A stretch of DNA of 64,000 bases from Magallana gigas (taxonomy: Eukaryota). The notes beneath the pieces were generated by a model, which was given only the letters and a program-made list of their open reading frames with translations, was not told the origin of the DNA and did no database searches. Both the position numbers and the translations under genes were made by a program. Shown one piece after another: positions 15,530 through 18,096 of this stretch. Position 1 is the first letter of the stretch; every line of letters starts with the position of its first letter. The DNA lies in the NCBI RefSeq assembly GCF_963853765.1, contig NC_088859.1, positions 35,960,001 to 36,024,000 of the forward strand, read 5' to 3'.

Positions 15530-18096
15530 GTACATGCTTCACATGTAATTTGTTTAATATGCTTTATTTTGATAATTTTACCAGTAATTTTTTCTTGCCT
15601 GCTTCTCCCTGCACTGAATTCTTCTTTATCATATTTTATTCTACCCTATCTTTTATTGAATACCAGGGTATTTTGCACTTGTCTTAAATTTTACTCTTTT
15701 TTAATGATGTATGTTGTTTTCATTTCTCATTCTCCAATTTTGAAAATGCTGTGGAAGCATTAAAATTCAAGGGGACCAATTTTCGTGGATTGCCTAAATT
15801 TTACAGGTTTGTGGGGATGTAATTTTGTGTATTATCTTAAAGGAAATAAACTTATAATTCTAATTTATTTTAAAATTATTGGAAGATGTTAATTCCTGGA
15901 TGAGAGGTACCCATGAAATCCAAGAAAATTTAGCCACCAAAATATCTAATGATTCCACAGTACTCAAAATTGGTAAAAAAAAAAAATTTATTTGGAGAAT
16001 TGCATTAGTTGACATAGCAGAATCTGACAGACTATTTTCAAGGGAAAAAAAATGATAGAGATACACTGTATTAACATTTTTAGAAGGTGAATGTAATGTT
16101 TTTCATTACCATCAGTAACTTGTACTGGTACCTACTTACATGTTTACTGAATACAGGGTTCTTTTTGCCCCATTTTTTTTTTTTTTTTTTTTTTTTTGCC
16201 TTTCTTTGCTTGTTCGTGGTTTTGCCCTCTTGAATTTGCCAATGCAGACACAGTATATGATAAAAACTCTTTCTAATTAACACAGTAAAGAATTGTTTTG
16301 AATTCGCCCAGGCTTAAATTCGCCTGCTAACAATGATGGCAAAATGAGCAAAAATACAACTAAGGGAAATTGTTTCTCTGCATACAGTATGTATTATCTT
16401 TCTAATGTTGAGGGGTCATTATATCCCCTTCAAAAAGTCAGTAAATTTAATAGTGTACTCAAAAAATGTTTAGGTATTATTTTCATACAGAAATGTATAA
16501 CCTTTCAGAAGTTACATACCATAATATATCTTAGTAGGCTGTGACATCAGTCAGATTAAGTTTTGTGAAGGGTAAAACCAAGGTTATATTCTTCACCAAA
16601 TATGCCATCTATAAAATGTTTTAATTCAATACACATTTGAGTTTAAATATTATGATACATGAGCTTTTGTTACCCCTCTCAATATTTCATTTGAATCTTT
16701 ATGTAAATCTGTAAAGCAGTGTTGTTTTCTAGGATATTTAAGGTTGTCTTTTCAATTTTTGTAGCCTGCAGCCGACCCCAATGATCCTTTTGGATTTTTG
16801 GTAGCATCTAAACCAGTCCAGAATGGCTCTGTAAGTTTTACTAACTTGTTCTGATATACTTGTACTGGGAATTGTTGTTATAAAGAACCATATATGATAT
16901 GAGTTTAATTTGGCCCCCATTATTTGCCATTTTTTAAGTGTTTTGGGTACAATAAAATGTTAACTTATTTTTAAGAAGAGTTGATTTAAATTATATTTTT
17001 CAACTATAAATTTGATTTATTTGCACTCACTGGCAGTATATGACGTCATAAGTGACGCTATTTTTAGAATTCAATCAAAATCAGTCAAAAATTGACATTT
17101 TTCTTATCTTTTTACGAATGGGAAACATAGAGCGCATGCATGAACAAGATAAAAAATTTTGTCACTTATTAGTCTTGGTTAGATACATCTCTGATTAAAA
17201 TATTTTGTTTGTTCAAGCATGCGCTCTATGTTTTCTGAAAGGAAAACTGCTTGAAAACAAGCTGTTATATGCTAAAAATGCAAAAATGGCGGGAAGAGGT
17301 TGTCTTTACGATGTCATATTTCTAAATTGTGGGCACTTGAACCAAAATGAATATTATGTAAACACATCACATATATATCTCTCCTAAAATAACAAAGAAT
17401 TACAGAAAAATTTCAGGCCCATATCATATATAGTCCTTTGGTTTCCATTTTGAATCCATTTTTAAGGAGGCTGGTTGGTCAACAAATTAACCATCAGATC
17501 TGCTTTAAACTTAAACAAAAGATATTTATCATTTTCCTATATCTTTATACAGTGCTCTTTTTCGTAGGAGATTTAAATAGTCTAAAAATGGCCACGACCA
17601 TCAAGCCCTCCTAAACTGCTAATTTTAAGTGTATTACATAAACTTGTAAAAGTATCGTACATGCTATTCTTTATACTTCTGTGCCAGCTTTATTCTTTTT
17701 CTGTGGTATGTGTGCTTGCAGCAGCTATGCTTAAATTATGCAAATACAAATTTAATTGGCATTACTTGTGAAAAATCAGTGTGCATACTGGCATGTGACC
17801 GGTTCTTGCCGGGTACCATTTCTCGCCAGTATATTGTGACGTCAATTTTCGTATATGATTTTATGTGTTGATAAAATGACGTCACAATGTACTGGCGAGA
17901 AATAGTACACAGCGAGAACTGGTTGCATGCCAGTATACTTAAAAAAAGGAAGGTGAAAATAAAGGCATTTATATATAGCAAAGCTTGATCTTGGCTTGTA
18001 TCCTAACCTCTGCTTTCTATTATTTTACAGTAAATGGATTTTAACCTTAATTTTGTGTAGGAACCAATATATGCAACAGTCAATAAAGTTAAGTAA
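6524..18096 (+). CDS. Dab: Disabled (Dab1/Dab2-like) PTB-domain endocytic adaptor, ~827 aa long form
   Basis: Exons 6524-6629, 7579-7796, 7979-8113, 8394-8529, 9814-9875, 11462-11542, 11641-12108, 12249-13424, 16765-16830, 18061-18096; all GT-AG, phases consistent, frame open. PTB domain [29 protein letters not shown]...[21 protein letters not shown]...[26 protein letters not shown] is typical of Disabled. The tail has NPF, DPF and PxxP motifs. Confidence 0.93.
6767..6903. mobile_element. Small degenerate MITE (CATGG..GGATC / GGATCCGC.CATG termini, poly-C/G core)
   Basis: Imperfect terminal inverted repeats catggatggatct ... ggatccgcacatg around G and C runs, in Dab intron 2. Confidence 0.5.
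8681..9687. mobile_element. Non-autonomous DNA transposon (hAT-like CAGTG termini), ~1 kb
   Basis: 15-bp perfect TIR cagtgattgggaagg (8681-8695) / ccttcccaatcactg (9673-9687), flanked both sides by attgtg (6-bp TSD). No long ORF. Confidence 0.8.
13861..15529 (+). mobile_element. Non-autonomous Helentron (Cg_HINE/CvA-pearl type) carrying a tandem array of ~166-bp units
   Basis: T-rich start and 5' hairpin agctcacctgaaccGAAggttcaagtgagct. (GTCC)n microsatellite ~13915-13950. About 8 units of 166-167 bp (14128-15460). Subterminal IR caggtgagc (15497) and 3' palindrome ggcccatgggcc. Confidence 0.85.
16881..17439. mobile_element. Old MITE, Kolobok-like termini (AAAG(A/G)AC..ATATATG / CATATATAGTCCTTT); second copy at 49355-49939
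   Basis: Imperfect TIRs; clear colinear similarity to 49355-49939 (e.g. gcactcactggca.tatatgacgtca, aaaatcagtcaaaaatt, aaaacaagctgtt). Superfamily call is inference from the termini. Confidence 0.65.
17785..17936. repeat. Imperfect ~150-bp fold-back palindrome (MITE-like) in last Dab intron
   Basis: atactggcatg...tttctcgccagta.attgtgacgtca / tgacgtcacaat.tactggcgagaaa...catgccagtat. Confidence 0.75.

Follow-up and report, generated by a model that had tools for sequence, protein, structure and literature searches.

How does the adaptor gene of an oyster come to end in a peptide that resembles a segment of a bacterial effector, and what decides whether the protein carries it? The question is raised by a 64,000-nucleotide stretch of the Magallana gigas genome (NCBI RefSeq assembly GCF_963853765.1, contig NC_088859.1, positions 35,960,001 to 36,024,000 of the forward strand), referred to here as the window, in whose coordinates positions are given. 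The window holds the single Disabled (Dab) adaptor gene of this oyster, an orthologue of Disabled, and the tail region discussed below is the 3´ end of that gene. Its last intron ends at either of two 3´ splice sites placed 30 nt apart, about 1.2 kb downstream of 16830, and the choice between them adds or removes an 11-residue C-terminal tail opening with EPIYATVNK. On balance, we favour the view that this tail is a splice-gated phosphorylation site of the Src/Abl type that would dock a Csk-type SH2 protein on Dab, a view built on the letters of the peptide.

The assignment to Disabled, already made in the original prediction, is borne out by the PTB/PID and DPF-rich open reading frames and by the closest database relatives, all of which are named disabled homolog 1 or 2. 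When the large exon was used in a profile-free search and clusters were then looked up, the window products proved to be “disabled homolog 1 isoform X1...” of Magallana (Crassostrea) gigas; one of them, P0027, has 841 aa. Full-length window products (P0022 and relatives) carry a precomputed match to PF00640 (PID/PTB) as their N-terminal domain; one window exon taken alone scored 18.9 bits, just below the cutoff of 20.9. The C-terminal half has the features of the family, being disordered and proline-rich, with many DPF motifs and a 17-residue stretch in the open reading frames.

The penultimate exon ends in phase 0 and is directly followed by a GTAAGT donor at 16831. At the proximal acceptor, a CTAAC element that presumably serves as its branch point precedes a tract with 16 pyrimidines in 20 positions, and the AG is followed at once by TAA (18031-33), as the original prediction had stated; the tail-less protein ends ...VQNGS. 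The distal acceptor is a TAG (AG 18059-60) that opens onto 11 codons (18061-18093) and a TAA stop at 18094-96, and both the predicted coordinates and the tail-stop reading agree with the letters of the window. The 30 nt between the acceptors are intron in the tail form and TAA stop plus 3´ untranslated region (UTR) in the tail-less form, and they contain a candidate branch site TTTAAC (18040-45) and a U-rich tract. No RNA structure beyond that of shuffled sequences was found around the two acceptors (z = +1.3).

Both joints are present in mature mRNA, which makes this a tandem 3´ splice site, two AGs of one intron being used. The distal joint 16830^18061 (GT..AG) was found in raw poly(A) RNA reads (2 in X21, 5 in X22) and in the RNA contig of X1, and the earlier reservation that this acceptor might never be used can be set aside. 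Three Logan mRNA contigs, fully spliced and each from a different run (L001, L002, L003), carry the proximal joint 16830^18031 as ...AATGGCTCT|TAAATGGATTTTAACC...; no metadata were found for these runs. As predicted, the choice of acceptor adds or removes the EPIYA tail and alters nothing else. Neither mRNA is expected to be a target of nonsense-mediated decay, because by the established rule a stop in the last exon, as TAA is here in both forms, should not elicit it. In the data examined, the tail form appears to be the major product and the tail-less form a minor one: the cluster members listed comprise about 33 tail-bearing and about 4 tail-less contigs, a rough estimate of the proportion and not a measurement, and the proximal joint fell below the listing threshold in three raw-read runs in which the distal joint had 2 and 5 reads. 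Such scarcity could indicate that the proximal acceptor reflects splicing noise, that the tail-less mRNA made through this nearby AG has no function and that only the tail form matters. We consider this very improbable, given that the proximal polypyrimidine tract, CAG and TAA are kept in five oysters of four genera within an intron that is otherwise unalignable, that the isoform pair differing by 11 aa is annotated in three other oysters, and that an analogous design with a stop behind the acceptor is conserved in scallops.

The oyster comparison was made on the genomic loci of M. gigas, Crassostrea virginica, Saccostrea cucullata, Saccostrea echinata and Ostrea edulis. All five show the proximal pyrimidine tract and CAG|TAA, a near-identical stretch of 30 nt, and then YAG|GAR CCN.... 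Only 2 of 50 positions are invariant in the upstream intron (17961-18010; mean pairwise identity 0.39), compared with 25 of 30 in the spacer between the acceptors (18031-18060; 0.91), 20 of 33 in the tail codons (18061-18093; 0.77) and 11 of 47 in the stop codon and 3´ UTR (18094-18140; 0.54). The spacer is in other words better conserved than the tail codons themselves. The differences among the latter are mostly synonymous and EP[IV]YATVNK is fixed in oysters; together with the near-invariance of the spacer, this indicates selection on the peptide and on the spacer with both acceptors. Conservation of motif and paired acceptors in related oysters, on which the original prediction depended, is thereby confirmed. 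RefSeq lists isoform pairs that differ by exactly the 11-aa tail in C. virginica (864 and 853 aa, and 581 and 570 aa for the short isoforms), S. cucullata (841 and 830 aa) and S. echinata (821 and 810 aa). The proximal tract contains 15-16 pyrimidines in 20 positions versus 12-13 for the distal one at the Magallana, Crassostrea and Ostrea loci, and the two tracts are equal (12/20) in both Saccostrea species. The proximal site seems to be less used despite its richer tract in three of the five oysters, which would fit a spacer that carries its own branch site, a U/GU-rich tract and perhaps sites for regulators.

The tail is not confined to oysters. A word-index search with the tail region matched oysters only, a misleading outcome, since scallop clusters are represented by tail-less isoforms; when the cluster members were read, the same on/off pair was found in four scallop genera, and RefSeq gives both forms for four scallops. 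The tail form there ends ...EPIYAVVNKP(K/R)S and the tail-less form ...N, with ...NSTG-EPIYAVVNKPKS versus ...NSTG-N in scallops and ...GPQ-EPIYAVVNKPRS versus ...GPQ-N in Pecten. The tail exon is preceded by a conserved acceptor, TTTCAG|AATTAAGGC, at a distance of 416 nt in Mizuhopecten and 407 nt in Pecten, and therefore scallops also terminate right behind an alternative acceptor, at another distance than oysters. A broader search placed the motif near the C-terminus of Dab in further phyla, and all isoforms listed there keep it: in the brachiopod Lingula (C-terminus of 14 residues with the motif), the nemerteans Lineus (EPLYATVNKQKREVDLL) and Tubulanus (EPVYAIVNKDDNQKRES), the chiton Liolophura (DPVYATVNKNKPPDGTLDLL) and the chelicerate Limulus (EPVYSKINKVNKEEGT). 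In Liolophura (P0107) and Lineus (P0113), a few residues separate the motif from a C-terminal DLL, an ending that resembles a clathrin box. Judged by these sequences, the tail is an ancient short linear motif, [ED]P[ILV]Y[AS]x[VI]NK, at the C-terminus of protostome Dab, and it has been lost in several lines. Pteriomorph bivalves are the only group in which splice gating of the tail is documented.

The annotated Dab of mussels, heterodont clams, unionids, gastropods, insects and crinoids lacks the tail, as do the vertebrate Dab2 sequences retrieved, with the caveat that some clam, unionid and gastropod models are ab initio and could miss a microexon. In Mytilus, all annotated isoforms end ...NDPFDTFFK and there is no tail-like open reading frame in the gene and 10 kb of flanking sequence; the Mytilus mRNA contig stops shortly after its stop codon. 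The internal tyrosine site of Mytilus Dab varies, reading EEPVYSVPTN, EEPVYSELYIYNGYDEISEPIYEVPTN or EEPVYSCHQH (P0066, P0075 and P0023), and splice variation of an internal tyrosine module thus seems, from these sequences, to be present in tail-less mussels too. Database look-ups of P0043 and P0026 gave no record.

What could the peptide be recognized by? The EPIYA-A segment of CagA from Western Helicobacter pylori is EPIYAKVNKKK (PMC2768901), and the identity of 9 in 11 residues that the original prediction reported is confirmed against the published table. Phosphorylated EPIYA-A and EPIYA-B of CagA bind the SH2 domain of Csk, and the consensus of the bacterial motifs is EPxYAxV; it is reported to be under-represented in mammalian proteomes, and EPIYAES of Pragmin falls outside it (PMC3593179). 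The oyster EPIYATV (18061-18081) matches this consensus in full. The human peptide ISAMpYSSVNK, from Cbp/PAG, is bound by the Csk SH2 domain (Kd 0.5-1 uM; PMC5071372), and the corresponding ligand pattern, with a small residue at +1, V/I/M at +3 and Cbp-type N-K at +4/+5, fits YATVNK by sequence and is present in all Dab tails found. In p140Cap, EPLYA is both an Abl substrate and a Csk site, the Abl determinants being E at -3 and an aliphatic residue at -1 (PMC3561454). The Dab tail offers E at -3, an aliphatic residue at -1 and A at +1, which would suit such a kinase. That the conserved positions coincide with known determinants of the kinase or of the Csk SH2 domain argues for a candidate Src/Abl phosphosite docking a Csk-type SH2 protein.

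DNA that encodes EPxYAxVNK occurs at only 2 sites in the 564-Mb genome, versus 1 site for a reversed control pattern. This rarity and the maintenance of the peptide across genera and phyla despite synonymous changes indicate that, as a sequence, the motif is more than a chance occurrence. The second site, EPLYAQVNKNK (L012:1501-1527; G000:C5:242792-242818), lies in an open reading frame that ends ...GGADSWV-stop, similar to a PDZ ligand, 3.8 kb downstream of an armadillo-repeat exon (L015:5699-5962). From this one armadillo hit and the DSWV ending, the reading frame is probably the last exon of a gene related to delta-catenin/p120, a family known for its phosphorylation by Src. The second gene hints that the motif may be a reused signalling element.

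Several other classes of ligand were considered for the tail and dismissed. An immunoreceptor tyrosine-based switch motif bound by SAP is not a good match, as the SLAM peptide SLTIpYAQVQK needs T at -2, where Dab has P. A pYxN site of the Grb2 type would require N at +2, and the tail has it at +4. The last residues vary (VK, IK, FK, TN, KS, RS), unlike those of a PDZ ligand, and the Myosin-VI “SYF” region of Dab2 gave no convincing alignment.

The tail is not the only optional tyrosine. Alignment of the M. gigas isoforms revealed a microexon (see the table) that encodes ETLN(G/E)DEIDEPIYE and, when joined to 11462 (VPPNN), creates an internal EPIYEVP site similar to the YxVP sites of Dab1. The window allele reads ETLNGDE and the database proteins ETLNEDE (GGA versus GAA at 10108-10110). 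All four combinations of microexon and tail exist: both are present in P0027, the tail alone in P0028, P0037 and P0033, the microexon alone in P0022 and neither in P0036. The 841-aa protein has only three tyrosines outside the PTB domain; two are the EPIY sites, and both are optional. Oyster Dab accordingly carries tyrosine motifs on two alternatively spliced segments. A further type of isoform arises from an internal GC-AG donor, 12584|GCAAGT (CAG|GCAAGT), in the large exon; spliced to 16765, it keeps the reading frame and leaves out about 280 residues. The resulting proteins of about 545-558 aa are annotated as X5/X6 (P0029, P0031, P0033), and the X1 contig has a loose end at 16763.

One attractive possibility, favoured above, is that Src-family or Abl-type kinases phosphorylate the tail tyrosine, which has E three positions before it, an aliphatic residue directly before it, and A and V at +1 and +3. 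The phosphorylated tyrosine would then dock a Csk-type SH2 protein through pY-[A/S]-x-V-N-K, as do Cbp/PAG and CagA EPIYA-A, and possibly others, e.g. SHP2. A Dab molecule that holds NPxY receptors in coated pits could in this way recruit a regulator of Src kinases. With EPIYE|VP as the second module, splicing would yield Dab with two, one or no phosphotyrosine modules and leave the endocytic PTB and DPF parts unchanged.

Some of our own data weigh against this proposal. Splicing and conservation were observed, and the proposed phosphorylation and docking of Csk or other SH2 proteins are read from motif resemblance. The absence of the tail from mussels, heterodont clams, gastropods and the retrieved vertebrate Dab2 means that it is dispensable in many lineages, and the low counts of the proximal joint in reads and contigs allow the tail-less form to be a constant minor product. 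Finally, Y-x-x-[V/I] is equally a YxxPhi sorting signal. Unphosphorylated, the tail (YATV, YAVV, YAIV, YSKI) could bind mu2 of AP-2 or another mu-homology domain, and splicing would then tune endocytic avidity by adding a contact to an adaptor that already bears DPF motifs. The invariance of Y and of V/I at +3 in all taxa, the wealth of DPF motifs in an endocytic adaptor and the DLL endings of the chiton and Lineus proteins all agree with this. It is established, however, that mu2 reads mainly Y and the +3 position and prefers residues bulkier than V there, and a sorting signal leaves unexplained the equally strict E/D at -3, P at -2, aliphatic residue at -1, A/S at +1 and N-K at +4/+5, flanking positions that match the kinase and Csk SH2 determinants instead. 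We therefore hold a sorting signal to be an unlikely sole explanation; the two functions could coexist, with phosphorylation switching between them. Slightly less likely still is that the tail docks a different partner, a non-SH2 domain or a lineage-specific protein, and that its similarity to EPIYA and Cbp is coincidental. The N-K at +4/+5 is no recognised general SH2 determinant beyond Cbp, and no vertebrate Dab2 sequence that was retrieved contains the motif. Yet every conserved position coincides with the bacterial EPxYAxV and with the measured Csk SH2 ligand, and members of the Dab family are classical Src/Abl substrates in vertebrates (PMC3232236).

The phosphosite proposal has a close precedent in vertebrates. 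Splice removal of Src-family-kinase tyrosine sites is established for Dab1-E versus Dab1-L (PMC3232236). The original prediction stands as regards the on/off alternative given by the two acceptors and its conservation, and fails as regards novelty: splice control of SH2-docking tyrosines on a Disabled protein, which it was not aware of being described, is known for Dab1. In both systems a Disabled adaptor has tyrosine motifs on alternatively spliced exons; splicing decides on phosphotyrosine signalling in Dab1 and would do so in the oyster protein, and the oyster EPIYE|VP microexon parallels the YxVP sites of Dab1. The arrangement differs in that the optional exons are internal in Dab1 (exons 7-8), whereas the oyster module is an 11-residue C-terminal tail controlled by tandem 3´ splice sites and an immediate stop. 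The vertebrate sequences retrieved, all of them Dab2, contain no YAxVNK tail. The oyster short isoform made through the GC donor at 12584 is reminiscent of the two main splice forms of Dab2, p96 and p67 (PMC5122593), which concern another part of the gene than the tail switch.

Other relatives of the tail lie outside the family. All conserved positions of the Dab tail (E-P-Phi-Y-A-x-V-N-K) recur in CagA EPIYA-A, at the 9/11 identity noted above. The oyster tail is endogenous, single-copy, C-terminal and ancient. The bacterial motifs occur as internal repeats and are regarded as mimics of independent origin, and beyond the motif itself the proteins share no homology. Convergence of a bacterial mimic on a host class of kinase/SH2 motif, not homology, is the best reading of the resemblance to CagA. 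Cbp/PAG shares pY-[S/A]-[S/T]-V-N-K with the tail through ISAMpYSSVNK, but is a transmembrane raft adaptor without E-P at -3/-2, and its site is not C-terminal and, as far as examined, not splice-gated. Pragmin (EPIYAES) and p140Cap (EPLYA/EGLYA) likewise have endogenous EPIYA-like motifs that are phosphorylated by Src-family kinases, Csk or Abl and bind the Csk SH2 domain; their residues at +2/+3 lie outside EPxYAxV, and the proteins are unrelated to Dab. We know of no splice gating of either motif. Full-text literature searches returned no paper on oyster Dab, nor any that connects Disabled to motifs of the EPIYA type. Already known, then, are the two isoforms, which are in RefSeq as automatic models for several bivalves, and the Dab1 principle of splice-gated tyrosines. 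New is the C-terminal EPxYAxVNK of invertebrate Dab, with the evolutionary depth to which it is kept and its agreement with both the bacterial consensus and a Csk ligand of measured affinity; new too is that tandem acceptors, one of them with a stop right behind it, gate this ending. A broader and more tentative idea, to which we give somewhat less than even credence, is that EPxYAxVNK of protostome Dab is the ancestral animal counterpart of the “master-key” motif imitated by bacterial EPIYA effectors. It would be a phospho-dependent dock for Csk-type SH2 proteins on an adaptor of NPxY receptors and clathrin, predating the split of molluscs, brachiopods, nemerteans and chelicerates, with the tail and EPIYE|VP each splice-gated in pteriomorph bivalves.

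The layout of the gene, from two fully spliced transcript contigs aligned to the window, is given below.

Table 1. Features of the Disabled gene of M. gigas in window coordinates.
Feature	Position	Strand	Evidence
5´ UTR exon	3040-3162	+	contig alignment
Start-codon exon, ATG 6524 (MSEETNA...)	6443-6629	+	contig alignment
PTB/PID domain, three exons (span 7576..8528)	7576-7796, 7979-8114, 8393-8528	+	open reading frames, contig alignment, PF00640
Further exons	9813-9875, 11462-11543, 11633-12108	+	contig alignment
Optional 42-nt microexon	10096-10137	+	AG/GTAAGT borders; in L001, skipped in L002
Large disordered exon, DPF-rich and proline-rich stretches	12250-13424	+	open reading frames, contig alignment
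Penultimate exon, 66 nt, 22 residues with DPF motif, phase 0 end	16765-16830	+	open reading frame, RNA joints; kept in oysters
Last intron	16831 to 18030 or 18060	+	GT..AG joints
Proximal 3´ splice site: CTAAC branch-like element 18003-18007, pyrimidine tract, CAG (AG 18029-30)	18003..18030	+	sequence
Inter-acceptor segment, 30 nt	18031..18060	+	proximal junction in L001-L003; oyster alignment
Terminal exon	from 18031 or 18061	+	RNA joints
Tail coding segment, 11 residues and TAA stop	18061..18096	+	distal joint in X21, X22, X1; C-terminus of P0027, P0028, P0033, P0037
3´ UTR, reaching at least 19000	18097..19000	+	strand-specific depth, contigs; L001 aligns to 18518

Some further features of the locus were noted. 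One RefSeq isoform (P0030) has a different N-terminus from an alternative first coding exon at 7160-7189. The AATAAA in the last tail codons (18083-18088) is probably not the main poly(A) signal, as RNA coverage reaches 19000 or beyond and C. virginica does not conserve the hexamer. In the 3´ UTR, a poly-G run (18748-18762) differs in length between the window and an RNA contig, with 7 bases left out at 18760. The last intron holds an inverted repeat (17785-17936) with 64-nt arms that are 86% complementary and 24 nt apart. This hairpin, which resembles a miniature inverted-repeat transposable element, sits about 95 nt upstream of the proximal acceptor, and the flanking intron is unalignable between oyster genera. 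Within the intron from 13424 to 16765, the stretch 13800-15600 is repeat-rich. RNA depth there is very high, ranging from hundreds to above 1000, loose ends and internal joints are numerous, and the minus strand has two identical 69-aa open reading frames (14454-14663 and 15119-15328). The stretch appears to consist of copies of an interspersed repeat that is abundant and transcribed.

In summary, EPIYA motifs have been studied almost only as bacterial weapons, and the named endogenous carriers are few (Pragmin, p140Cap). Here, an ancient adaptor of signalling and endocytosis conserves as its ending, in several invertebrate phyla, the full EPxYAxV with a Cbp/PAG-like N-K. Even if the tail were not phosphorylated and did not dock Csk or another SH2 protein, there would be a defined and conserved short linear motif, conserved tandem acceptors and a highly conserved 30-nt candidate regulatory element. 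If it is and does, a link between Dab and the control of Src-family kinases would extend far beyond the Reelin pathway of vertebrates, and splice-gated phosphotyrosine sites on Dab would be older or more widespread than the case of vertebrate Dab1. The tail would also provide a natural reference for what bacterial EPIYA motifs resemble, and, on the broader idea above, a tractable natural system for studying what the EPIYA code does in animals that are not the hosts of the effectors.

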